This document shows, piece by piece, positions 2,597 to 20,500 of a stretch of DNA of 64,000 nt. The number at the start of each line of letters is the position of its first letter. The stretch's first letter is position 1. The stretch is from Cyanophora paradoxa CCMP329. Taxonomy: Eukaryota > Plantae > Glaucophyta. The stretch lies in NCBI GenBank assembly GCA_004431415.1, contig QPMI01000054.1:388236-452235 (forward strand), read 5' to 3'. Made by a program: the position numbers and the translations under genes. Below the pieces are notes generated by a model. It was not told where the DNA came from. It did no database searches and saw only the letters and a list, made by a program, of their open reading frames with translations.

Positions 2597-5500
2597 ATGT
2601 CGGTGAGTACGAGCTGCCGCCTAGGCCTGGCGCCTGCAATCGCTCTCGAGCTCGGGCCGCTCCGGTCCGCGGGCGCGGGGCTTACGGGACGCGCGAGCCC
2701 ATCGGTCAACCTCGCCGGCTTGTAGTGCGGTTTTTGACAGACATCCGTTTGCGTCGCAGCTCAAGTGCCAGGCTGTCAAGCGCCTCGCCAGCTACAACGC
2801 CGCCGACGGCAACGATGCGTGCGCTCAGCTCCGGGCCGGCTCTTGATCATAACCAAGACGAAGGCCCGCCCCTGAATTCGCGGCTGCGGGCGCAGGGCGC
2901 AGGCGAAGATCGTCATCAGCAAGTCGCTGGCGAGCACCTTCGATTTCCAGGTCCGCGCATGTTCAGGCCGCCGGGCTACCCGCGCGCACGCAAGCCACGC
3001 TGTGCGTGTGCTCACGGCCGCTGTAGGGCCACCCGAGCGACTTCCGGGCGATCGACACGAACCACGACAACTTCGCGTCCCAGGCCGAACTGGAGACGTT
3101 CTTCGCGGCCCAGGGCCTAGACTCTACCCAGATCAGCAAGCTGGTCCGCCTTGTCGAGATGTCTGAATCGTATTCATACAGGCCACTTAAAAAAATTTGT
3201 TTCGTCGCGCAGGTCGGCCTGTACGATGGTGCGCGAGTTCGAATTCAACGCCTGCGCGGCAATATATATGTGTCGCATCCGACTTTACAGTGGATGCTCG
3301 ATTGTGAGCCGCTAGGGCTCTAGATGATGTATGCAGCCTTCGTGCTGCTAGGCCGACGGCGCCTAGGCTAGTTAGAGCGCCGCGGTCATTTGTATGCGTG
3401 TGTCGGGGTACGCCGTAGTTGGACGGGTACACCCTCAGTCTACCATCACGGTGGCTAACAGCAGCAGCACTCGCCAAACCCCGCCCTGCCGAGCTTGCAC
3501 TCCGCACGGGCTTCTCGCGCGCACGATTAGACACACTAATCTCGCACGCGACAGGCGCCATTCTGCCGGAATCGAACCTTCAAGGGTCTGAGTCCGTATC
3601 GCTCTCCCCAGCCCCGCCGCGCAGCGCGCATCGCTGCGCCGCCTTGCCCAGTGCCTATTGGAGCCAGAGACCTGCTTTCCGCGCGAGCGCCGTCCCCACG
3701 GTTGCTTTGCGTTTGAGTGCGCCGCCCTGTACCGCTTGCGGTTGGACGGTAGTGCACCGGAAACGTCTCTAGTGCCTATCGCGGGCTTCGGGTCATCCCC
3801 AGACCGAAGCGCACGCGCCGAGCTCTCTCTCGAGAGTCTCATCATTGCCTGTCCCATCGCCGGTTGCGAGCAACCGTGCCACGGAGACTGCTGCGAGCAG
3901 CTCTCTAAGTGTCCCTGAGTCGCGCTCTTGCGTGACCGCGAGATCCCCGCGCCGGATTCTGCAGCGAGCTGCAGATCAAATCCCGCGCCTAGTGCTCTCC
4001 CCGGCATCTTGTTCTTGCGGCTTTACGTTGCAAAGAGAACAACATGTCAAACTCCTCGGAACTTCTTAGTTCTGAAGTCCGGAGCCAGCTGTCTGCGCTC
4101 GCGCATGTTGAGCCTGCGAAGGCCGAACTTGCTGTGCAGTACGCCGCCCCCGGCGCCTCGGCTGTGGCTGATGACGATCCCGCGCGGATCGGATTCTTGC
4201 CCGCCCAGCCCCGCCTCGCCGATGGTGACCGGTTCCGCAAGGACGTCCGGAACTATCAGTCGGCGCAGCCGACGAAGTATCTCTTTGGCCCCGACGCTGC
4301 CGGCGGCCAGGAGTATACTAAGTCCGAGGCTCTTGCCGGAGTGATCGTCGGGCGCATCCGCCCCGGCGCCCTCCGCGCCGTAATCGAGCGTAAGCGCGAC
4401 CTCTATGAGGCCTCTATTGCTGGCCTGGAGCGTGACCGCGCTACGCTGCGGCGCCTTGAGCTCGTCCCGGCGAACTTGCGTTCTGCCGATGACGACGCCA
4501 CGATCCTCGCGCTGCAGCAGAGCTGCGCGCGTGATGAGGCCTCAATCGTGGCCACGCGTGATGCGTACTTGCGTGCCCCCGGGCTGCTAGACACGATCAC
4601 GGCGTGGATCCACAAGGCGCGCCCGCACGCGGCCCGCCGGGCCCTCACTGAGCCCTACACGGGCGAGGATCCGCGCTCATGGCACGACTGGTTCTTGCCT
4701 CTCGTCCGGCACACGCTGCCGACGGGCCAGCGCCTCGCCGTGTACTACGCCGAGTGCCTGCGCACTGCGCTTGAGGCCCGTGCGACGAGCGAGGACCCGG
4801 AATATCAGAACCTTGATGTTCGGATGGCCGGGTTCGCGAAGCTGAACGAGCGCACGCTGCGCGAGTTCCTCACTGCGCTGGACCAGCGCATTCTCGCTCT
4901 GGACGGCGCCCTGTCGCCGCTCCAGCTGGACGATCTATTCCTCCAGGCATGCGAGACGCACGGCTGCCGTACCGTGCTGCCACCCCAGGCCATGGTCGCG
5001 CCCGAGGCGCCTGAGACCAAGCGCCCCGCGTGCGCAAAATGGCCGTGGCGGCCGATGACGAGGACGAGCCTGACGAGGCCGTCCCGACGAAATCGGTGCA
5101 CGCCGCCCCCGGCACCAAGGCGCCGCCGGGCGCCCCCGTCTTGAGCCGCCGGCACCCGGACGAGGAAAACCTGGGGTACCCGTGCACCACCACGACGCCA
5201 TGCCCCCTGTGCATGCACGTGGAGATGCCGGCCCTCGACCGCTGCCACTTTACGTGGAATTGCGCGTGGGGCACGGCCCCGTTCCCCGGCATCCCGTACG
5301 CCGACTGGGTGAAGGGGATCGCTGAGAAGCGGGCGGGCTTGAAGCGCCGCGAGCGCGCGACCCGCGAGGACGAGGGCCCCGACCGCGACGAGCGCGGGGA
5401 CCCCGGCCCGAACCGCGGCGGTTACGCCCACCGCGGTGGACACCGCCAGGAGCCGTACCCCCGGGGCGGTTTCCAAGCCCGCGGCGGGTTCCGCGGCGGC

Positions 5501-8500
5501 GCCCGCAGCGGCTACGCCGGCGGCTCCGGCCGTGGCCCGGCCTCCGGCCCGAACCAGCGCCCGCTGGGGAAGGGTAAGGAGACGAGCGAGCAGGATGAGC
5601 AGCGAGGCTGCTGGACCTGCGGCTCGCTGGACCACATGCGCCGGGATTGCCCCTCCGCCCAGGGCAACGCCCAGAGCGGCCGTGGCCGCGGCTATGGCCC
5701 TGAGCAGAACCGCGGGCCCCGGCCCCGGTTCAACCAAGTTCGCGCCGGAGGCGATCCGCCGCGCTCCGAGCCGCCGAACCCGGGCGCTGCCCACATGGCT
5801 GAATTCTTCCAGCATCTGCTGGTTCAGTCGCAGCAGCAAGCCCTGCACGAGGCCGCGCGTGCCGCGAGCTCCTCCTCGGCAGGCAGCAAGCCCGGCCCAG
5901 GCGCCCCGAGCGGCGACCCGTCGATCAAGTCCGTCCTCGTGATGCCCGTGGGCACTGAGACGGACATGGACCTCAGCGTCCCCGTCGCCGCCGTGCGCCA
6001 GCCGGCCGACGCCAGCGTCATCGCCGCCCGGGCGCGTGACCAGGCCGCCTTCGACGCGGCCGCCTCGACCCTCGCCGCCGGCGCCCTTGACGACGCCGCG
6101 CGTGAGACCGAGTTCGAGGCCGCCCTGCGCTTTGCCAGCCCGGCAAGCGACGATGGCTCAGGGGACTCGGAAATCGGCGAGACCGACGCCGACGGACTGA
6201 GCGTCCGCTCGGAGTCCGACCCCCTGGATCCCTGCGGCAAGGGCTCGGGTCTCGAATACGTCGAGAAAAAGCCACTGTCCGCGCCCACCGGGCTGCGGTA
6301 CATGCCCGGCGACCACACCGAGAGCGTGCTCGTTGACTCGCAACGCGAGGGCAGCCGCTTCATTGTCCGCCGCATTGCCCCCCTGCTCATGCCACTCTCT
6401 AAGTGGTACGCGCTGCTGGCCTCGGAGCCTCGCGCGCTGTCGAGGGCCGTCGGGCTCCTCTTCACCAACGGCATGGAGGGGCATAAGCAAATCCCGCTTG
6501 TGCGCAAACTTGCCGGCGAGGGTACGATCGGCATCGTTGCCGATCGCTTCCTGGGCGCCTGCGGACTGAACCGCGCGGACCGTCTCCTCCTGGGTCGCTT
6601 GACTCAGCGCACCGAGGTTAACAACCTCGCTTGCGTGATCGAGACTGCGGCCGTGGTCGCCCGCACGGACCACCGCCTGCATGAGGGCCCGGATTCCGGC
6701 CGCGCTATGCGTGCAATTCTGCGCGCGGCGTTCGCCCACCCCGAGGACCCGGGCTCATGCTCTGGGGTCGGTCCCCCGCCTGACGACTCCGAAGTCGTCT
6801 GGCCCGATCTCGCCTTCGAGTTCGACACCGCGTCGCCGCGCGCGTGGGACGATCTGCTCGCCGCTTGGGAGCAGCACGCCCCGAAGTCGGCATGCTGGGA
6901 CCTCGCATCTGAGGCGAGTTGGCTTAGCGACTCTGATCGCTCGCCAATCTTGTCCCTTCTCGTCGCGTCCGCGTACCTGCTCGCCCAGCCGGGCTTGCAG
7001 TGGCCCCGCATACTGGCTGAGAATGCCAACGGGTATGACGTGGCGTTTGACCCGCGGGACTGGGACGAGACGCCCGATACCCCGGTCTCGCCGGCCCTGA
7101 CGGGCTATCACGCGATGCGCTCGGCACTCGCCGCAGCCCGCGAGATCCTCCACGAGGACTGCGACTTCCACGCATACTGCGTGCAGTTGCTGCTGGCCAT
7201 AATCCGTTTCCGCACCCTCACGGTCGTTCCGGGGGCTCTGGGATTTGGCAAGAACAGCCTCTTTGAGTGGATCACCCCTCACGACGTGGCTCCGCCCGTC
7301 ACTCAGTACCAAACGTATGCCGCAAGGCTGCGTGAGGTCGCCGGCGCTGCTTGCTTCGACAAGAGCTCCGAGGGCACCGTCGCCGCTCGCGTCCTGGCCA
7401 CACAGGCCGAGCGCCGCGCCCGCTGCGTGCGGGGCGAGCCCCCGCTCGTCAACCTTTCCGAGCTCGTCCAGCACGGCTCCGATTTGGACAAGTGGCGCGT
7501 TGTCTACGTGCCCGAGCGCGTCGCCGTGCAGCGCATGGCCCGGCTCATTGACCCGCGGCGCCCCGACGAGTTCAGCTCTCTGCTGTTCTCTGACTGGCTC
7601 CTGGGGATTGGCACGTACCGCGCTGCCCCCACCGTCGTTGTGGACCGCCCCGTCGGTCCCGACGAGGGGCTCCGGTTCCGGCACCACCCGGACGCCGACC
7701 CCCTGATGCGCGGGCCTAGCATCGAGGCGTTCCTCGATCGCCGTTATCCGGTGCCCCGCCGCGATAACCATCGCGAGGTCGACGTGCTCGACCTGCTCGC
7801 CTCCCGCGCCGTCCCGCGCCTTGGTCCGCCGGACCTGGTGAAGAACGAGCGCCGCTCGAGCCCCGAGTTCCTGTGGCTCATGAAAGCGCTGCAAGGAGAA
7901 ATGGATTCCGCCGCTCGCAATGGCGAATTCACGTGGTGTGTGTTCGTCTGGGTCTGCTACTGCATGTCGCAGTCCGGCGTTTACGCCACCACACTCCTTG
8001 ATCAGCCGGCCCACCGCATGCGGTTGGTCTACGGCGAAGTGCGCCGGCGCTATAAGGGCCCCCACACCAACAGTTCGGTGTGGGACAAGCATAACGAAAT
8101 CATCGCTTCGTGCGATGCGTTGGCCCGAACAGTCGCCACCACGCGCCGTGGCCGCGGCAAGCCGACTGCGGCAGCCGCCGGCACCACCGAGGGCCGTGGA
8201 CGAAGCGGCTCGCGCGCCCGCCGCGGTGCCCCTGCTCGCCCGCCCGGCGACCGCGCCGCCGCCAGCGGCAGTTCGGACCCGGGCTCCGGCTCGTCGGATG
8301 AGGGCGAGGGTGGCGCCGCCACGCCGCCTCCAGACGCCATGGAATCCGATGAGCATGCGGGTATTGATGCCGACGCCCGTGAGCGCATGTGGCACGCGCT
8401 CTTCGTCCGAAGCGGCATCGACGCAAAGCTCTTCGAGCTCGTCGGTTGCCCCGCCCCGTCGTCCAACTGGTCGACGTCGGTCGAGCACATGTGGCTCGCG

Positions 8501-11500
8501 ACCAGTGGCCTCACGCAGGCCCAGAACCCGCTCCTGCTGCAAATCGAGCCCCACCCCGAACTCCAGGGCTGGCTCGCAGCAGAAACCGCGCAGCCCCCGT
8601 GGCGCCGGTTTAGCCACTTCCACGCAGACGCCTCGCGCGAGGCGTGGGAGCGACTTGAGCTGAGCGTGCCCCAGCGGCACCCCGCCAACGTGCGGTTCCT
8701 ACGGCGCGCGGTTGCGTCGTTCGAACTTGCAGCCTGGAACTCGGGTCTCTTGACCCCGCGCCCTGAGCTCCCGACGGAGCCGGACCGGTGGACCTGTTCC
8801 CACTGGGACGCGGTTTTCCTGGACCGCTTTGAGTTCCACGTCTCCCGCCTGCCGGGATACTACGTCAATGACCGCTGGCGCGCGTCCCAAAACACGGGGC
8901 CCGGTCTTGATGTCGTCGAGCCCGTGCCTGCCCACGCACGCTGGCTGATGTCGTGCTGGTTCAGCGGACGCACTGGTCCGGGAACCGTGCCCTTTGTTCC
9001 GTACTCGGAACAACAGCTGCCCGAAGAAGTTCGCTTCTTCTACGGGCGCGTCCGCGCGCTGCACCCGGGTTGCGAGGGTCTCGTCTGCGAGCTCGCCTCC
9101 ATGTACCCCCGGACCTGAACATCTCCGAAGTTGTTCAGCGGGCCGCCGCAAAGATGGACGCGGACTCCTGGCTGAGCCAGGAGGTTCGGCTGTACGACAA
9201 CGCCGTCGAAGGGGCCTCTTGGACCCTGGGCGAAATCGACTTCCCCGTCGAGGGCGCGGAAGTCGTCATCCGCTCTCTGCCGTTCGTGCGGTGGATCGAC
9301 GACTGGGCCGGCGCCGTTCGCGCGAACGAGCGCGACGCCGCGGGCGACACGCCCATGGTCGAGGCCACAGCCGCCGCCTCCGCCTCGAGCGCCGCTGCCG
9401 CCGGTCCCTCCGAGCCCCCGGCTCCGGACCCGCAAGCCCCTCCGGGCTCGCGCACTTGGTACGACGGCACGCTCGAGCGCCTGCGGTACTGCGAAAAGTA
9501 CTGCGTGCTGCTCCCGGACCCGCTCGGGGCGGGCTCCGCAACCAACACGTTGCCCGAGCAGCAGCCCTGGGGCGCAATCCCCCGCCTCCGTACTCTCATG
9601 TACGGCGAGAACGGGCCACGGGACTGCGGCCCCGTGTTTAACCCGGGCACACACCTGCAAACGCGCTTCCACCCGGACGCGCTCGACGCCGATGCTGCTC
9701 TGCACAGCCTCGCCTCGACGGTCCTTGGAAACGTCGAAGGGCATAACCGCGGCATCCCTGCCGCGATTTTGCTCTACGGGCCGCCGGTCCCGCCGACTCC
9801 GACCACCCTCGAGGGTGCGGACGTCCAGGGCCTGCCCTACGTGCTCGCGATGATGGGGCTCGATGAGCACATCACTAAGTGGGTCTCCTCGGAGCCCGCT
9901 CTCCCGCTCCGTGAGGACGGGCCGATCACGAAGGCGTACGCCACGCTGAACACGGTCATGCACCACACGTGTCGCATGTCCTACGCGTACCTGCACCGGC
10001 CGCACCAGTTCAACCCCCACGCGGGGCCGAACCGTGCACCACCGCGCAGTCGCGTGGTCGCGTTCAAGGACCCGCGCTTCGGCCGCAAGTTCGGCATCCG
10101 CGTAGTCGCGCAAGCCGACTCGCGCGTGCGCATGCTCGTCCCCGGCGAGCCGGTCCTAAGCTCCGAGCGTGCCTTCGCGGCTGAGCTCGATGCGAACGCC
10201 CTCGACGTCCTCGGCGACGCCGCCGGGAAGAACGCCATCCGCGTCACGCTGGGCCCCGCCCACGTCGCGATGCAGTACCCCTCCGAGGCGGAGGCGCGTC
10301 GCCAGCTCGACCGCTTGCCGCCCCGCGTCTTTACGCTGGGGTACGAGTCCAGCCGGCCGCCGGTGAACCCGATGCACAAGGGGACGCGGATGCACCCGCT
10401 CGTCTGCCCCATCGTCACCGAGAACGGCGCCACGTGGGCACCGCTGCCGACTCGTGAGTTCGTCGCATCCCTGCTTGCGGGGTATGTGAACCACTTGGCC
10501 GGCTGGATCCTCGGCCACGAGCTGCCTGAGCCCCGGCGCCCGGCGCCGGTGGCAGGGTACAACGTGCAGATGCACGTCGTGGGGCCGACCGCGGCCTATG
10601 AGTTCTTGCGGGATATCTGCTATCGCGGTGACCGCAATACTCTGAGCGCTGACAAGCGCGGTAGCCACATGCGCACGGTCGATGGTGACGAGCTTTACGC
10701 TGTCTACCACACCGTCAAAGACAAAGTCCCTACGGACATTGTCGACGAGTACGCGGCCCTCGTTCTGGCCTCCCAGCTTCCGCTGGCGACCCTGTTCTGG
10801 TTCTCCATGCCAGACCTTCCCCGCCCGACCGCTGTCGCCACATCGTGGCTCGACAATGCGCCGGCGTCGAAGAAGCAGCTCGCAGACGCGATGCTGCAGA
10901 TCTGGGGTTTGCCCGCGACGACTCAGCTTCGCGCACTGCTCGCAAAGCATGAGGACACTGTCGGCTGCTTGGATGTTCGCCTCCTTGAGCGCATCCTGCC
11001 CGCCCGTACCACCGCGCACGGCATGCGCGAGTTCTGTCACGTCGACCGTGACACGTGGGCCGCCCGGCATCTCTCGCATGCTGGCGAGGATCACATGCTC
11101 CACGGCCAGGAAGCCACCTCGCGGGCTCTCCTGAGCTGGGTTCAGAAGATCAATGATGTCCTCTGGCCCATCATGACGAGCGCACGCCCGCCGCGCCTCT
11201 TGGTCTCCGACCTTTGGCCGGCGCCGGCTTTCGACACGGTCGCTAAGCCGGATGCGCCCTTCCCCGCACCTGCGGATGCGCCCGACCTGGGCACCACGGT
11301 AATGGCGGTCACGCCGTTCCATTACCGGATGTCGGCTGCCCTCCTCATGCACTGGAGCGGGCGCCGCCCCGAGGTCATCCCGAAGACCCTGCGGGCCCAG
11401 GTCCGGGGTGACTCGACGCCCAAGAAGGCAAAGGACGAAGCGTCCTCTGCCTCGGGCACAACGGGCTCCGGGTCGCGCGAGCCGAGCCCCGCTCCCCGCG

Positions 11501-14500
11501 CCTCCCGCTCGCCGGTGCCTGAACGGCGCCGTGCGTCCCGCACGCCGCAAGGCGCGAAGCGGCAGCACCCGGAAGCCGAGCGCCGCGAGGCTCGCTCGGC
11601 CCCGCCGCGCGAGTCCTCCTCCCGGTCCCCCGCCGACCGTGCGCGCGGTGGCCGTGCCCGTGAAGGCACTCACCGGGACCGGCGCGTGATGCACGGCAAC
11701 CGCGTCACGGTGACCGCTTCGACCGCGCCTGCGGCGAGCGACGCCGACGACTTCGCCGGCCTCGATGACGCAGCGTTCGCTGCCGTCGCGCGTGAGCACG
11801 GCCTCGAGCTCGAGGACGCGCCCGCACCGGCGCCCACGCCGGAGGAGACGCGCGCCCGCCTCCTAGCCGAAGCCGAGCGCCGCAACAAGCGGGCTCGCGT
11901 TGCACCCAGCGGTGTCCCGCCGGCTGACGCCGCGGCGTACCCGCCATTCCCCATGGGCCCGCCGCCGCCGCGGCCCACCTGGGGCGGGCCGCCACCGGCC
12001 CTGATGCCTCAGATGCCCGGAGGCGGCGGCTACTATTGGCCGCCGGGCATGATGTACGGGCCGCCGATGCCGGGCGTGACCGCCCCTGCTGGCCCCGGCG
12101 CGCCGGCGCCCGGCGACAGCGCCGGTGCAGCCCACTACCAAGCCGCCAAAAACTGGCGCGCTCGCTTGCGCCTCCTGCTCGAGGCTGGCAACGAAGCAAG
12201 CCCGCCGCTTCTGTCCGAAGTCCTGGACGAGATTGCGACCGCCGCCGGTCACAATCTTCCGGGCACGACGCTTCCCAGCGGCGCCTCGTGGGCGGCCCTC
12301 AACGTCGCCGCGACGATTTGGGCTGCGGCCGTTCCCAGCTTGGAACAGTTCGATCGGATCGAATCCGAGCTGCTCCGGCTGATTGGGCAGGCCCAGGCGC
12401 GCCAGGCCGAGGGCCGCTGCCGTCCTGGCGCCCGCGCCGTCCTCCGTGTCTACGGGGACGATGACGGCGAGGACGACTTCGCGACGCGCGCTGCACTGCA
12501 GCCGCGGTCCATCGCCGAAAGCGTCCTGGCGGCTGCGACCAGGGAGCCGCAGCCCCTCACGGACGGGCCGGACCGGAAAACCTCTGCAGCCCCGCAGAGT
12601 CGGTCCGCGGCGTTGCACGCCAGCAACAGCCGGCAGCGCTCGTCGCTGCACTTCCCCACGCCCGCCGCCGACCCTGGTGACCTCACCGGGTACGGCCCGG
12701 ACCGCCCGTCGGACCTCGCGGTCCCGGAGTCCCCCGAAGGCGCGCCGCCCGGCAGCCTCAACGCCCCTATCCCGATTGCGCATGTGATCGATGGGATCTC
12801 GGGCCGCCCGCACGATTTCCGGCGCCTGCAGCTGCAGTGCCCAGGATTCGTCTACGCCCTGAATGCTGACGGCACTCTCGGCGCTAGCACGCGTGTCCAA
12901 ATCCTCTTTGACACCGGCGCTATGGGCGAAGTTGGCGAGAAGCGCCACATGCCCCCGGGCACCCGGTACACGGGTGTGAAGGTCCTGAGGGCCTTCCTGC
13001 ACCACGCCACGATCACGGCCGAAATCGCGCACGTCGTGCTGCGCTTCGGTGACGTGTACGTCTCGCGGGCCGTGTACGTCGTCCCCGACGGCTCCCTGGG
13101 CCCAATGCCGACCTGCTCGTGGGCATCGGCACGATCATGATGGTCGAGGGGCGGATAGACACGACCAGCTCTGGCTGGTGCCTGCACGCGCGCGACGCGC
13201 AATTCCGCCCCCACGTGATCCCTTTTTGCTGCCCGGACAAACGAAGGGGCCTCTCCTTGTCCGGGTCCTTCGCCCTGTCGTCCTGAAGGACGCGCGCGAG
13301 TGGATGGTCCGCTGCGTGATTGACGGCCCTGCGCCGCCTGCGGACCAGGCTCCGACGCTCGCCGTCGGGCCGGCGCCCGACTCCTTGTCGGCGCTCGGGG
13401 TACTCGCGCCCCACCAGCTGCACCGGCGCCCAGCCGCGGGCGGCAGCCTGCATGTGCGGCTATTAAATCCCGCCAATGAGCCCGTCCTGCTGCCAGCAGG
13501 GGCCGTTGTTGCGGTGGCGGAGGCTAACAACCTGCCGCCCGGCGACTTCGGGTATGACCCGCCACCAGACGATGCGCCCGTGCGCGCAGTCGCCGATACT
13601 TTCATCCGCACGCTGCGAGCCTTTTACCCTAAACGGGGCCAAGGCTTCCGCTCGATGCGTCGCCGGGCCAATCGAACGGCCGCGGCTTATATGGCAGCTG
13701 AGGGCGCGCCGACGCCCCAGCACCCTGCCCCGGGGCCTATCTTTGCGGCACCCGCCGCCCGGCAGTCCGATGCGACTGCAGCCACCGGGCAGGAGCCTGC
13801 GCCGAGCGCACCTCCGCTGTTTGTCCGCATGATGCGCGACGACGACGACGAGGGCCATGAGGTCCCCATCGTCACGATGGAGGGCCTCGCGCTCCACGAT
13901 GAGCCGGTGTCGTCCGACACCGACTCGGAGCTCGAGCGCGACGTCGGGTACCCGGGTTGGACCTCCCCAGAGGAGCGTGAACGAACCCGGCCGGCCCGCC
14001 GCGCCGAGCGCGCCGCACGCCGCCGCGCCCGCGCGGCGCGCGTTGCGCGTCAAGGGCTAACGTAGTCCCAACCAATCCTCCGGGGATCAAATAAATCTCG
14101 CTGCCGACGCAGCCGAGCAGCCGGCGCCTGCGCCGAGCACAGCTGCTGCCCGCCCCGCGACGGCACCAGCGCCGCTGGACGGCCCTGGCTGCTCCGTCCG
14201 TACCACGGACGCGCCGGGCGCGCCTTCTGCAGCCGAGTCCTCTGCCGCGCGCGGCAGGGACAAGGGCAAGGCGCCGCTGCGAGCCGCCCCTCCGGGCCCA
14301 GCGCCTGGACCCTCCCATGGCGGCCCCCGCGGGCGCCTCCGGAAACGACGGGGACGTCGTCTTCCGAAGAGGAGGAGTGGAACCGAGCACGTGCTAAAAT
14401 CCCGGAATGCGGCTCGCATCCGGCGATGAGCACTGCTGAACGCGCCGAGCTCGAGGCTCTGCTCAAGCGCTATTCGTGCGCGTTCGCCGACTCGGTCACG

Positions 14501-17500
14501 GCCACCGAGGGCACGGCCAACCTCCTCCACTACGAGCACGTGATCCGATTGACCTCACGGCTGCCCGTCTTCACGCCCCCGCGGCGTGTAAGCCCGCACG
14601 CCGAGGCCTTCGCCCGTGCTGAAATAAAGCGGCTCCTTGAGCTGGGCTTGATCCAGCCCTCGCAAGCCGCCTACGGCTCGCCGGTCGTGCTCGCTCCTAA
14701 GAAGGACGGCACCTGGCGGTTCTGCGTCGATTACCGACGCTTAAATGCAATCACCGAGCGCGACGTCTTTCCGCTGCCGCGGATCGACGATCAGCTGGAC
14801 CGCCTGCGGGGTCCATGATCTTCTCGACCGTCGACGCGACGGCGGGCTTCTGGCAGCTGCCGCTGGACCCTGCGTCCCGGCAGTACACGGCCTTCGTGGT
14901 GCCCTGGGGCCACTACGAGTGGCGCGTGACCCCGTTTGGCGTGACCAACGGGCCGGCCGCCTTCTCGCGCGCCGTGACCGCCATCCTCGGCCCCCTGCTC
15001 ACGACTTGCGTCACCGCTTATATCGACGATATAACGGTGTTCTCGCCGAGCGTGCCCCAGCACCTGCTGGACCTCGAGGCCTTGTTCCGCGCAATCATGC
15101 CGGCGAACTTGCGCCTGAAGCCCTCCAAGTGCTGCTTCGGGGTGGCTGAGGTTGCCCTGCTCGGGCACCTCGTCTCGGCCGAGGGGATCCGCCAGGACCC
15201 CGCGAAGCTGGCGTTCATTCGCCAGTACCCGCCGCCAGCGAACGCTGACCAATTGAGGTCGTTCCTGGGCTTGGCCGGGTACTACCGGCGGTTCGTGAAC
15301 GGGTTTGCCCGTGTCACCCACCCTTTGCAGCGCCTGCTGCTTCGGGACGCCGTGTGGCAATGGACCGAGGTCCACCAAGCCGCCTTCGAGGCGCTGAAGG
15401 CTGCCCTGCTCGAGGATCTGGTACTCGGGTACCCGGATTTCGAGCGGCCCTTCATCCTGTCGACCGACGCGTCGACGTACGCCATCGGCGCGATCCTGTC
15501 GCAGTCCGACGGCGGCTCGCCCGCCCGTGAGCGGCCCATCGCGTTCATCAGCCGAACGCTGGCGCCCGCTGAGCGGAATTACACCGCCACCGAGCTCGAG
15601 TGCTTGGCGGTTGTATGGGCAATAAAATACTGGCGGCACTTCCTCTTGGGAGGGCCCCAGTTCCTGGTCCGGACGGACCACCAAGCGCTCCAGTGGCTGC
15701 GCTCGCGCGAGGCGACCTCTGGGAGGCTGGGACGCTGGTCCCTCCTCCTGCAGTCCTACGACTTCGTCGTAGAGTACCGCGCGGGGCGCAATAACGGAGG
15801 GCCCGACGCCTGCTCGCGGCCCCGTTGAACCACCCGGTTCTCGCCCCTGGCGGCGCCGACGGCAGCTCAGCCGCGCCTGACGCGCTGGCTGGCGCTGCGG
15901 GGCATGGCGTGCCCCAGCCCGGCGACCTCGATGAGCCGCTGCCGCTGTTTGCAGTCGCTCTGGGCGCCGAGGGCGCTGCGGACGCCCGGGTTGCCGTGGA
16001 AGCCCCGCCGGGCCCCCGCCTGACCGAGCTGGCTGATGAGCCGGACGAGGCCGCGCTGCCGGGCCCCGCCCATGCGCCTGGGCCCGCCGAGGCCGAAACG
16101 CCGGCGGCCCCGCCGAGTCGGGCGGAGATCCTCGTCGCGAGGCGACAGGCCCGTCTCCGGCGCCAGCTCGCCTTCGAGGGCGCTCCCGCCGCGAGGCGAG
16201 ACGTCCAGCCCGCCCAGGGGCCGCGTCCACGCCGGACGCGCGCGCCGCCTGAGGCCTTCCGAGAGGGCTCCGACGATGAGCCCGTCTCCCTCTCCGAGCG
16301 CGCGCCCAGAGCCGCGCCGGCGGACGCCGAAGACGAGCCCCAGGGGCCCCGGCGCCGCCCGAACCCCGAGCCCCTGCCGCTGGGCAGGAGGCGCCCCTGC
16401 CCGCAGCCCTGCAGCTGCCGCAGGCCGGCCCGCCGACCCGGCGCGGCCGCAAGCCGACCACCTGGGCCGCGATGCGGCAGGAGGTTGACGAGTGGCACCG
16501 CCTCGCTGTCGAGCAGGGCCTGCCGCCGGCCCCGCGCTCTCCAAGCCCACCGCCGGCTCCCGAGGCCGACCCCATGGAGCTGGGCTCCGATGGCGAGGTC
16601 GCCCCGCCCGTGCCGGGGCCTGAGGCCCCGCGCGAGGCGTCCGAGCTTGAGCTCGACGAGGACGGGTTCCCCGTTACCCTCCTCGATCGCGTACGCCGCC
16701 GGCTCCCGTCGGGACCGCGGCGCTACGAGGGGCCTGTCGCGCCCCTGCCGCGCGACCAGCGTCCGCCTGAGGCCCCGCGCCGGGGCAAGACGCCCCGCAA
16801 GGCCGACAACCCGCGCCACTGGCGCTGCGGCCCGCCGCTGTACCCCCGTCAGGACGATCCCGACGAGGGGCCCGAGGGCGGCGCCCCGGCGGCGTCGTCC
16901 TCCGCGGCTGCGTCGACCACTGCGGCGACAGCGGGCTCATCTGAGCCGCCGGCTGCCCCTGAGGCGCCCTCGAGCGGCGACGCCGGCTCGAGCGGCGGCC
17001 CAGCCGCGGGCCTGGAACGGGAGCTCCTCTCGTCCAGCGCCATCGCCCCTGGCCCTGAGCTGGGCGAGGTCCGAGACCGCCGCAAGCCGCGCTTGCTGGA
17101 GCTGGTCCAGGACACCTGGGATTGCGCGCCGCCGCCTTCCTTGACGGGCCCCTGCCCGAGGCCCTGCGCCACATGTTCCCCGCGCGGCGAGTCCGGCTGC
17201 TCGCTGCGCAGAAGGCGGACTCGCTGTGCCGCAAGCTGTTCTCCTGGCACGAGAACGGCGTGAACGAGGCGCGCTGCACGCGCGCCTCCTGCCAGACGGG
17301 CGACTGCTACCTCTGCAGTCAGGCCAAGGCGGCCTTCGTCAAATTCGCCCAGAAATTTGACGTGGACACAGACGGCGTGCTCGTCCGCCGCCCGGCCGCG
17401 CCCCACGGGCGCTTCGTGCCCGTCCTGCCTGAGTCCTGGCAGGACCGCGTCCTGTACGCGTACCACGATGGGTGGGGCCACCGCGGCGCCTCGATCGTCG

Positions 17501-20500
17501 CCCGCCGGATCCTGCTGAGGTTCTGGTGGCCGGGCATGCTTGCGGCAGTCGCTCGCTACGTGCGGAGCTGCCATTGCTGCCAGTTCGCCAAGGCTGTGAA
17601 GCCGCGGCGAACCGCGATCGCAGTCATCGAGGCCGAGGGCCGGAATGACTTGTGGCAGGTGGACGTGTTCCACCTTGACCCGACGCCGCGCGGCAACCGG
17701 TATTTGGTTGCCTGGGTGAACGCGTGGGACAAGTACACGCGGCTGTACCCGAAAGCCGACCTGGACGGCTGGTCCATGCTCGAAATGGGCCGAGACTTCG
17801 TCTCGAATGAGGGCGTGCCGCTGCGCCTCCTCATGGACAACGGGTCCAGCCTGAAGGGCGGCCCGTTCAACGAGTACTTCCGGAAGCTCGGGACTCGTTT
17901 CATTTACGCCGCTGCGTACCACCATTCGACGAATGGGCTGGTAGAGCGGCTGGGGGGCGTCGTGAAGACGCTGCTCCACGCGGCGTGCCGCGCCGAGCGC
18001 GAGCCGATGCACGAGTGGGACCAGCACGTGCACGAGGTGCAGCTGGCGCTCCGCACGACCGTGCACGCGGCCACGGGCTACTCGCCCGCGCTCCTGCACC
18101 TGGGGCACGAGCTCACGCTGCCCGCGGACGTGCGCTTCGGGGTCGAGATGCTCGACACCCTTAGCTACGCCGACTACGTGTCAATCGTAGTGCGTTCCGC
18201 GAAGAGCCGCGAGGCTGCAGTGCGCGAGTACCGCCGCTGGTACCGCCGCCAAATGGTGCACCGGACGGGTGACCTGCCGGACCGCCGCCGCTTCGGCGTG
18301 GGCGACAAAGTCCTGTGCTGGCTGGGCGACCGTGACAAGGGGTTGTTCAACTCCTGGGTCGGCCCTTTCACCGTCATGAGCGTGCACCCGGGCGGGTACA
18401 CGTACGTCGTACGTGGCCTTGCGCGGCCCTACGGCGCGGTGGGCGCCGGCCGCCAGAAGGCGCGCGACACCCGTGAGACGATCGTGCATATCGACTGCAT
18501 GATCCCGTTCCGCGTGCGAGACGCGAACGCGCCTGCACGGCCGGCCCGAGGGCGGCCCAAGGCGGCGGGTGGGCCGGCTGCCGCGGCCGCAGCGCCGGCG
18601 GCTCCGGCGGGAGCGGCTTAAGGGAAAGCCGGCTCCGAGCCGCGTCCCGACCCCACGCGAGGGCAAGGACATGAGAGCGGCTGCGCTAGCCCCTTGGCAG
18701 CGCTGAGCAAGAGATCGCCCGAGGCGGGCTGGATCGACGGGCCTCAGAGCCCCGCGCACAACGCGAAAGCCCCGAGCCGAGAGAAGAGGCTGCGGGCGGC
18801 CGTCAGCCTTGAGCACAGCTCGGCGCGGTGACAGGGTGCGAGTCCCTTGTAAAGACCCGGGCAAATTGGATGAGCCGCGGGCGGCCGGTGGCCTTGAGCA
18901 CAGCTCGGCACGGTGACAGGGCTGGGGCCCTCCGAAGACCTAGCCGAGCCCTAGGACGCGCCTCGCGTCTGCAGAAGGGTCGGTAGGCGGCTGTGACGCC
19001 GAGTTCTGCCTCGGGTACAGCGACAGGGGATGTCCATTCCCCTCCGTGTAAGACCTGGCGGTGTACCAGGGCGCGCCTTGCGCCGGTGGGGGTACACGCA
19101 GGCGGTCGTTACGCCGGATCCCACTCCGGGTACGACGACTGGGGACGCAAAAATTCCCCCATTCAGGGCTCTGCACCGGGGACGCTCGGTGGCAGTTCGC
19201 CTGGGAGGGTCACGTCCCCTCGCAATGGACGTGCATGCACGGGTCGGGCAGGGCACCTGCCGTCACGAGTGACGGTGGTTTGAGCCCTGTGGGCGGCGCC
19301 TAGCCTCGCCCTGGAGATCCCTAGCTCCACCGCCGTCGGGGTCCCCCGATTCGATGCCGTGCAATTGCTGTGGGAGCGCGGCTTGTGCCTAGGCAGCGTC
19401 GCACGACGGGCTGCATATCCCTAAGCGCTGGGACGGGCATATTGCTGTGGGCTATCGAGTGCCATCGCGACGCTACGCCCGCGTTGCTGTTGCAGCGTGC
19501 GCTCTTGCGGCTAACGTGCTGCGCGATGAGGGCAGGGCCCCCTCGGCTTCTGTCTCCGTACCGCTCGCCTCGTGCGGGTTTGCCTGGGCCGCCGGCCCGA
19601 AGTTGGACCTTGCCCCCTGGGCACTACACGCTGGAGTCGTACCGGCACCCGCCGGGCGACAGCCTTTTTCGATTCCCGGCAGTCGCCGGACGTAGACGGG
19701 CTCGGCGTCTTTTCGATTCCCGGCAGTAGCCGGTGACGCCGACCGTGAGTGGCTCGGAGCCTTTTTTCGATTCCCGGCAGTAGCCGGTAGCTCCGAGCGT
19801 TTGTGTATAGCGGCCGGGGTCGCGTTGTATAGAGAGCTCAGGCTCGATCAAATTCCTGGCTTCCCCGGCCCTCTCTCTGTTCGCCTTCGGGCGTAGACCC
19901 GCGCGGACGCGGGATCCGAGAGGAGGAGTTGTCGCATCCGACTTTACAGTGGATGCTCGATTGTGAGCCGCTAGGGCTCTAGATGATGTATGCAGCCTTC
20001 GTGCTGCTAGGCCGACGGCGCCTAGGCTAGTTAGAGCGCCGCGGTCATTTGTATGCGTGTGTCGGGGTACGCCGTAGTTGGACGGGTACACCCTCAGTCT
20101 ACCATCACGGTGGCTAACAGCAGCAGCACTCGCCAAACCCCGCCCTGCCGAGCTTGCACTCCGCACGGGCTTCTCGCGCGCACGATTAGACACACTAATC
20201 TCGCACGCGACAATATGCATTGTATATATATATGGCCAGCGCCTGATGACATGATCATGATGGCCGCAAGCCCGAGTCCTAGATCTAGATCCGACATATA
20301 TATCTTCATGTTATATAAATCTTCATGTCTAGAGCTGGGCCGTTGCTTTCTCTAGATCTCGCGCGCCGACCTCACCTTCGATTCTCTCACACTCTCTGCC
20401 TGCGCAGCGACCGTCGCGCGCGCCGACAACAAGTACGCGAACGGCAACGCCGACGGCAAGCTCCACATCAACGAGTGCGCCTCTCGAGCCCCCTCCCAAT

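Follow-up and report, generated by a model that had tools for sequence, protein, structure and literature searches.

How can a retrotransposon of the Ty3/gypsy type come to hold about 2,400 extra residues between Gag and protease, and is this sequence a working part of the element or something that merely rides along with it? The question is raised by a long terminal repeat (LTR) retrotransposon in the genome of the glaucophyte alga Cyanophora paradoxa CCMP329, which lies within a 64,000-nucleotide stretch of contig QPMI01000054.1 (positions 388,236 to 452,235 of the forward strand). This whole stretch is called the window below, and all positions are given in its own numbering. The element occupies 3271-20212 and is 16,942 bp long. 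A preliminary description of the window had proposed a giant, young gypsy element encoding one polyprotein of ~4,860 amino acids (aa) with a long cargo behind Gag. We consider it very probable that four statements hold jointly: the copy is a young and intact giant gypsy element, the breaks in its reading frames are assembly errors, its coding region consists of two open reading frames (ORFs) with a -1 shift between them, and the cargo is old, constrained and specific to the family. The features are collected in Table 1.

Is the copy complete, and is it really of the gypsy type? Its LTRs are direct repeats that begin with TG and end with CA, they are flanked by a target-site duplication (TSD) of 5 bp, and a polypurine tract (PPT) adjoins the 3' LTR, as is required of an LTR retrotransposon. 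The catalytic motifs are all intact: DTG in the protease (PR), YIDD in the reverse transcriptase (RT), HHCC and DDE in the integrase (IN), and DAS. The domains follow the order PR-RT-RNase H (RH)-IN with the integrase after RT, which defines Ty3/gypsy; in copia elements the integrase comes before RT. The best match of the RT-RH region in the PDB is the Ty3 RT (4ol8, E = 6e-61), followed by the 'Enzymatic polyprotein' 8r0s (1.7e-39), which we take to be a caulimovirus protein, and by retroviral-type Pol at about 1e-21. RT was placed through matches to solved structures only; the Pfam families RT_RNaseH_2 and Integrase_H2C2 also fit Ty3/gypsy. The polyprotein coding sequence makes up 86% of the element. 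The identical LTRs, the intact TSD and the coding region at 4044-18621 that had been described beforehand all hold at their coordinates, and the Ty3/gypsy identity and the recent insertion stand as well. We conclude that the element is a young, apparently structurally intact copy of a giant Ty3/gypsy family, and that its insertion is recent.

The coding region is not open as it stands in the assembly. Between 3993 and 18618 the + strand is covered by long stretches without stops whose frame alternates, the coding sequence falls into at least seven frame segments, and the uncorrected window has at least ten frame breaks, all at short runs of G or C. Contigs derived from Illumina reads of three DNA runs (X1, X2 and X19; two from 2024 and one from 2012, from different studies) were placed on 12700-18650. 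Relative to the window, a single base is added after 13100 (C), 14053 (G), 14076 (C), 14807 (G), 15819 (C), 16342 (G) and 17138 (C), with the whole contig depth (100%) of each of the three runs in agreement, and one extra C after 14323 appears in a single run. With these eight bases added, pol becomes one open frame of 1,858 codons ending at 18618, and the read-corrected frames match the codon-position GC profile that had been computed beforehand. At the other two breaks a C is missing from a C-run, and near-identical sibling proteins encoded elsewhere in the genome are continuous: P0010 and P0003 at ~5022, where P0010 reads ...ETKRPRVRKMAV..., and P0002 and P0007 at ~9106, where P0002 reads ...ELASMYPPDLNISEVV.... 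The 2019 C. paradoxa assembly was made from PacBio RSII reads with Canu and Quiver (PMC6704402). All ten disruptions are best explained as single-base deletions of this PacBio assembly, and the earlier suspicion of homopolymer indels is borne out by the short-read contigs at every one of the eight sites checked. In the corrected frames 34 of the 40 differences between pol and the sibling contigs are synonymous and 6 are non-synonymous. The copies thus diverge under purifying selection, at least in pol, as expected of a family that keeps transposing.

Two side observations belong here. Within this element G/C runs of 2-5 bases have lost about 1 base per 1.5 kb in the assembly, in 10 deletions of which reads support 8. 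Over 12700-18650 the contig word depth sums to ~570-1,300 for the two runs of 2024 and to 16-200 for that of 2012, with RT and IN covered more deeply than the PR-RT spacer; this pattern fits a multi-copy family in which the conserved parts of pol collapse the reads of several lineages.

Siblings of the window copy can be sorted into lineages. Lineage A comprises the window copy and gene models on six further contigs (80-100% identity), lineage B comprises gene models on seven contigs, tig00000147 and tig00021572 among them, and lineage C is one model, P0020 on tig00000180, whose 2,964 aa run from the start of Gag to just past the protease. Pieces of these elements account for at least 15 gene models of the EukProt proteome of C. 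paradoxa (EP00741).

What remains after correction is one real frame change, at the boundary of protease and RT. The corrected Gag-to-protease frame ends at the TGA at 13281-13283, and between 13101 and 14052 contigs and window are identical, without any indel. The seven gene models that reach the boundary (P0005, P0006, P0007, P0010, P0012, P0019 and P0020) align to the window only up to 13151-13283, those of lineages A and B ending exactly at the stop. Pol is open in the -1 frame from ~13053, and the two ORFs overlap by ~230 nt. There are two ORFs, then, one for Gag, cargo and PR and one for RT, RH, spacer and IN. C CCU UUU is the sole in-phase heptamer of the form X XXY YYZ in the overlap, all three lineages keep the residues I-P-F that it encodes, and the sequence at 13227-13300 folds with -32.5 kcal/mol (z = -2.0 against shuffles). 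A programmed -1 ribosomal frameshift at 13220 is therefore the likely means by which the ORFs are joined into a fusion of ~4,860 aa, as far as the DNA can tell. The polyprotein of that length in the preliminary description stands as total coding capacity, but it is not one ORF; 4,860 aa would be reached by the frameshift fusion of two. By eye, the hairpin loop CGAAGG could also pair with a downstream CCUUCG to make a pseudoknot. Frameshifting by -1 from gag/pro to pol is reportedly in use in retroviruses and LTR retrotransposons, and the candidate signal resembles theirs in its heptamer, short spacer, downstream stem-loop and ORF overlap. It differs in being a predicted signal, and in having ~3,060 aa upstream of the shift rather than the few hundred residues that are typical.

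Then what is the cargo? It consists of ~2,400 aa between the CCHC knuckle (ending at 5656) and the PR domain (from ~12700), all in one corrected frame. It is called coding because of codon-position GC periodicity: GC content is 0.8-0.9 at third and 0.45-0.55 at second codon positions through its whole length. Lineages A, B and C all have the cargo, with its parts in one order, and five blocks (C1 to C5) can be told apart from low-complexity linkers. Compared with lineage C, four blocks out of five match the conservation of Gag (35%), and C2 falls below it (27%). Invariant motifs occur in C1, C3, C4 and C5, TPFHYR among them; those of C3 include RM.HALFVR.GID..LFE, RHPAN and VPSHARW, and C4 has many invariant arginines and a single invariant histidine. 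The alignment gaps cluster in linkers rich in Ala, Gly, Pro, Ser and Arg. Judged from these comparisons, in which it is collinear across three diverged lineages, the cargo belongs to the coding sequence of the element as an integral part, and neither a nested transposon nor a recent host fragment accounts for it. The ~7 kb frame earlier described between the knuckle (5603-5656) and the DTG motif (12910-12918) is confirmed, and the layout of blocks at ~6250-8150, 8340-9340, 9450-11400 and 12130-12420 agrees with the conservation profile.

Two other ideas about the blocks were tried and rejected, namely that they arose by duplication of one another or from Gag (hhalign probabilities do not exceed 3%), and that the cargo is membrane- or Env-like (no hydrophobic segment is conserved across lineages). 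We also observed that the divergence between lineages A and B is mosaic across ORF1: the N-terminus of Gag and PR share 86%, and the cargo between them 49-71%, whereas Gag and cargo have diverged equally from lineage C. The mosaic could reflect recombination between lineages, or a faster, perhaps diversifying, evolution of the cargo.

Does the cargo have relatives elsewhere? Word-index searches of 5.8 billion clusters matched only proteins of Cyanophora paradoxa. An exhaustive search of 1.84 billion representatives with a hidden Markov model gave seven hits, all above 240 bits and all from Cyanophora; its query was the A+B profile of C2-C4, C1 being covered by the word searches only, and C5, the stretch behind the nucleocapsid and the linker 11401-12108 lying outside it. 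In Pfam, a search for the cargo with all its pieces and with lineages B and C gave only the CCHC knuckle at up to E = 1, and nothing from ~5720 to ~12680. NCBIfam gave no match to the cargo, sequence and profile searches of the PDB with cargo, Gag and PR-RT spacer found nothing below E = 0.2, and an ESM Atlas feature search with C4 and C1+C2 returned no usable match. Scans of viral and metagenome contigs with the C4 profile produced pattern matches and no relatives. Nor did a stand-alone host paralogue turn up in the Cyanophora proteome, where all matches align collinear with the element's own coordinates. To the extent that such searches can show it, the cargo is conserved within the family and without relatives outside Cyanophora in ~15 billion proteins.

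Could the whole construction be misleading? The copy might be a dead, frameshifted relic whose long frames are partly an effect of 70% GC and whose polyprotein has been stitched together from fragments. The ten or more breaks of the uncorrected window would look just so, the antisense strand at this GC content also has ORFs of 400-640 aa, and one putative RNA run gave no RNA support. However, all eight testable breaks vanish in the independent Illumina contigs (seven at full depth in three runs), the other two are read through in sibling proteins, the codon periodicity follows the corrected frames exactly, most sibling differences are synonymous in those frames, and catalytic motifs, LTRs and TSD are all undamaged. 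For 12700-18650 the relic is largely refuted by these observations, and for the element as a whole we hold it to be very improbable indeed. Another possibility is that the copy is alive while its cargo is functionless, a spacer kept open only by the need to translate the protease and pol behind it, which any stop or frameshift would sever, with no selection on the amino acid sequence itself. For a stretch that shares an ORF with essential genes and precedes them, selection for openness alone is plausible; the linkers and the stretch between RH and IN do look like such a spacer in their low complexity, many gaps and poor conservation; similarity between A and B is clearly lower in the cargo than in Gag or PR (62% against 86%), and the cargo has no recognised fold or family. 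Free drift at such divergence would have left near-random identity, however, and C1, C3, C4 and C5 hold 32-43% to lineage C, where Gag itself holds 35% (C2 27%). Motifs with invariant Trp, His and Arg run across the same four blocks, whose composition is that of ordinary globular proteins, unlike the linkers. A mere spacer is in our view unlikely.

We give as little credit to the idea of a passenger cargo, be it captured from the host or a nested foreign element. It is true that the cargo must have come from somewhere, that an ancient capture could have diverged beyond recognition, and that the extra domains of another giant gypsy element, the planarian Burro, are recognisably host-like (PMC6431247). 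But no internal termini or repeats flank the cargo, it shares its frame with Gag and PR, its order is shared by three lineages whose Gag regions differ by up to 65%, every match in the Cyanophora proteome follows the element with no separate host gene among them, and the blocks are related neither to each other nor to Gag. The preliminary description had named a nested insert with its own termini, a cargo absent or non-coding in sibling copies, and neutral evolution as grounds for giving up the idea of a working cargo; nested termini are lacking, the cargo is coding and collinear in the siblings, and non-neutrality is judged from its conservation, the synonymous counts being those of pol.

The preferred explanation, an intact element with a constrained cargo of its own, has several points against it that should be weighed. 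The corrections at 5022 and 9106 rest on sibling proteins and lie outside the read-covered 12700-18650, and the sequences of lineages B and C are Augustus gene models, in which predicted introns can hide breaks. The count of synonymous and non-synonymous differences covers pol and not the cargo. The frameshift signal was deduced from the DNA of one lineage, its hairpin beats shuffled sequences only modestly, and its spacing of 4 nt is short. With Pfam, NCBIfam, PDB and ESM Atlas all blank, the cargo has no assignable function; AlphaFold2 models built from three-lineage alignments of 963 aa and 650 aa were unusable, with predicted local distance difference test (pLDDT) values of 32 and 31. Processing of the precursor is something that we purely infer. 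Finally, one putative RNA run, from a study separate from the DNA runs, gave only ~20-nt matches, which does not show silence.

How might such an element work? We propose that ORF1 (~3,080 aa) joins Gag, with its capsid-like and CCHC parts, to family-specific sequence of ~2,400 aa that the protease follows, the cargo being made up of five conserved and presumably soluble blocks joined by low-complexity linkers. ORF2, with RT, RNase H, a probably disordered spacer of 440 aa and the integrase, would be reached by the -1 frameshift at C CCU UUU and its hairpin. The cargo would be an old, vertically inherited part of the polyprotein with its amino acid sequence under constraint. Since the cargo precedes the frameshift, its amount would equal that of Gag, and it would be translated much more often than RT or IN; such output would point to a stoichiometric or abundant role rather than to a catalytic one at trace levels. 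The protease that closes the precursor probably cuts the cargo into several proteins, which would travel with the virus-like particle or act beside it. The recurring junction motifs once proposed as its cleavage sites do not survive, as they are not specific to boundaries: ORF1 has 16 matches to a loose regular expression that covers four of the five quoted sites, most of these matches lying within conserved blocks, and shuffled sequences have 8 +/- 2.8. The invariant arginines of C4 and its single invariant histidine might bind phosphate or nucleic acid, though this is a guess from the residues. Tentatively, and with less than even confidence, we suggest that the five blocks are new folds or functions particular to glaucophyte retroelements, made at the level of Gag and released by the protease, serving as particle or nucleic-acid components or against silencing, and forming an independent algal counterpart of Burro.

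Table 1. Features of the Cyanophora paradoxa retrotransposon, in window positions
Feature	Position	Strand	Remarks
TSD ATATG	3266-3270 (left copy), 20213-20217 (right copy)		Read directly from the sequence
5' LTR	3271-3553	+	283 bp, termini TGTCGC...GCGACA; 100% identity with 19930-20212
Primer-binding-site region GGCGCCATTCTGCCGGAATCGAACC	3554-3578	+	Directly 3' of the 5' LTR
ORF1 (Gag, cargo, protease)	4044-13283	+	~3,080 aa after correction; stop TGA 13281-13283
N-terminal Gag region	4044-5030	+	Capsid-like by position only; 86% identity to lineage B, 35% to C
CCHC zinc knuckle (nucleocapsid)	5603-5656	+	Pfam PF00098, E = 7.7e-5, over the curated cutoff; RGG-rich stretch before it
Cargo block C1	6215-7654	+	480 aa, orphan; 62% to B, 32% to C; motifs IIRFR.L.V, LF.DWL.G.G.Y
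Cargo block C2	7655-8134	+	160 aa, least conserved; 49% to B, 27% to C
Low-complexity linker	8135-8374	+	After C2
Cargo block C3	8375-9348	+	~325 aa, orphan, Trp-rich; 63% to B, 43% to C; spans the ~9106 assembly deletion
Cargo block C4	9451-11400	+	650 aa, orphan; 63% to B, 35% to C; invariant NV.GHNRGIPA, RFGR..GI
Low-complexity linker	11401-12108	+	Rich in Pro, Arg, Ala, Ser; from composition and gappy alignment
Cargo block C5	12109-12680	+	~190 aa, Ala-rich, directly upstream of protease; 71% to B, 38% to C
Aspartic protease	12700-13219	+	FDTGAMG, DTG at 12910-12918; ADLLVGIGTI at ~13110-13140; motif-based
Candidate -1 frameshift heptamer C CCU UUU	13220-13226	+	In phase with ORF1; reads show no indel
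ORF2 (pol)	13226-18621	+	-1 frame, ~1,800 aa from the slip site; RT, RNase H, spacer, integrase
Hairpin	13231-13266	+	4 nt downstream of the heptamer
RT (YIDD) and RNase H	14324-15819	+	Pfam RVT_1, RT_RNaseH, RT_RNaseH_2 (domains within 14815-15825)
Low-complexity RH-IN spacer	15820-17138	+	~440 aa, 80% GC; rich in Ala, Pro, Arg, Glu, Asp
Integrase	17139-18618	+	HHCC zinc finger ~17428-17595, DDE core ~17638-17922; Pfam PF17921 (Integrase_H2C2) and PF00665 (rve), within 17122-18618
Non-coding 3' region	18622-19929	+	Short direct repeats 18766-18921 and 19705-19805; no codon periodicity
PPT GAGAGGAGGAG	19918-19928	+	Adjoins the 3' LTR
3' LTR	19930-20212	+	283 bp, 100% identity with 3271-3553

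The conventional domains need a few further words. The N-terminus of Gag gave no match in Pfam or the PDB, and none to Retrotrans_gag or to Ty3 or Arc capsids, in sequence searches. At ~5195-5270, upstream of the RGG-rich stretch and the canonical knuckle, there is a second Cys/His motif, PCPLC...x12...CHFTWNC, which is kept in lineage C (PCPCC...HFKWEC) and missing from the gene models of lineage B, possibly through a predicted intron; by its pattern it may be an extra zinc-binding site in Gag. The protease region is the most conserved of all (86% to lineage B and 72% to C) and has no Pfam match. A dUTPase-like domain in the PR-RT spacer, prompted by the string 'GSLHVRLLNPANEPVLLPAGAVVAVAE' and the precedent of Burro, was rejected without support from Pfam or the PDB. 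The ~1.3 kb earlier noticed between RNase H and integrase is indeed there, as a low-complexity stretch that is open only in the read-corrected frames; it has no Pfam match in 16343-17137 (15820-16342 was not scanned in the corrected frame), and a second, archaeal-type RNase H as in Tat/Ogre was not found in this low-complexity spacer, whose scanned part is blank. Nor did Pfam find in 17122-18618 a chromodomain, the mark of the chromovirus branch.

As for the untranslated parts, the sequence at 3554-3578 (GGCGCCATTCTGCCGGAATCGAACC) resembles by eye the complement of a tRNA T-arm and acceptor strand, without the usual TGG start. Two copies of a similar T-arm-like motif, TTCGATTCCCGGCAGTAGCCGG, lie in sense orientation upstream of the PPT, at 19705-19805, and the 64-kb window holds no tRNA gene. 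In the 1.3-kb non-coding 3' region, 18766-18921 contains two direct repeats of 71 nt with 79% identity and a spacing of 85 nt. No separate extra ORF exists in the element, 18622-19929 showing no coding periodicity, and no second copy turned up elsewhere in the window by self-BLAST with the element. On the upstream side the gene model P0001 (tig00000204_g17763.t1, window ~2900-4050) is a chimera in which host exons upstream of the 5' LTR are spliced onto Gag and cargo of the element; its predicted intron masks the assembly deletion at ~5022, and its host exons contain by eye an EF-hand-like stretch, ...DTNHDNFASQAELETFF.... The element probably lies inside a host gene or adjoins one.

Has anything similar been seen before? 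The closest precedent is the planarian gypsy element Burro (GYPSM1), in whose polyprotein of 4,873-5,140 aa a Gag with CCHC knuckles precedes many added in-frame domains, with PR behind them (Grohme et al. 2018; Arkhipova & Yushenova 2019, PMC6431247). Both are of the gypsy type, their polyproteins are of nearly equal length, both have thousands of extra residues after Gag, and both owe their size to coding sequence. Any claim of uniqueness for the Cyanophora element has to be tempered by this polyprotein. The differences are several. About half of the Burro polyprotein falls in known families (Smc, MATH/TRAF, BIR, ankyrin, BCL2-like, SUMO-like, Env-like and midasin-like; PMC6431247), whereas the Cyanophora cargo matches nothing outside Cyanophora, and Pfam found none of the families Smc, MATH, BIR, ankyrin, BCL2-like or Env-like in lineages A, B and C. 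Burro exceeds 30 kb and has accessory ORFs, while the Cyanophora element has 16.9 kb, LTRs of 283 bp and no extra ORF; its host is a glaucophyte alga and not an animal; and its PR closes ORF1, with pol in the -1 frame. The resemblance is one of architecture and not of membership, the two having been compared by sequence through Pfam only.

Among plants, some Ty3/gypsy groups have a two-ORF layout, GAG-PROT followed by RT-RH-INT, with the boundary after the protease (Neumann et al. 2019, PMC6317226). The Ogre, Tat and Athila elements share with ours the superfamily and the domain order, and they are large, up to ~24 kb (PMC6317226). Their polyprotein is conventional, however, and their size comes from separate ORFs, LTRs of up to 5-6 kb and non-coding or tandem repeats; moreover, Ogre joins its two ORFs by splicing an intron, while those of Cyanophora overlap by ~230 nt with a slippery heptamer. 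Single extra domains are also on record, such as the AlkB-type m6A demethylase fixed in an orchid gypsy element (PMC9289625), which like the other plant giants owes its size to separate ORFs, non-coding DNA and long LTRs, and the DNMT of copia and DIRS elements (de Mendoza et al. 2018, as cited in PMC12344493). What these have in common with the Cyanophora family is an extra conserved module that was kept through many retrotranspositions and diversified into subfamilies. They differ in that the fold of their single module is known and that it mostly has an ORF to itself or closes pol, whereas here five unrelated orphan blocks stand between nucleocapsid and protease. For C. paradoxa itself, a repeat survey of 2019 gave an LTR content of 1.77% and 11.5% of unknown repeats (PMC6704402), and our literature search found no paper describing these elements.

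The fixation of extra domains in LTR retrotransposons is considered rare (PMC9289625). In the literature found, expansion of a polyprotein in frame by thousands of residues is known only from planarian Burro. The Cyanophora element is a second and apparently independent case, in which retroelement particles and translation would have to cope with a Gag-Pro precursor of ~330 kDa, a mass estimated from its length. The finding also bears on annotation, in that gene models of the C. paradoxa proteome are pieces of such elements. The ~2,400 aa of constrained sequence of unknown fold make a defined target for work on structure and function. If the blocks do turn out to be new folds released from the precursor, LTR retroelements can carry accessory proteomes of viral scale inside Gag-Pro.

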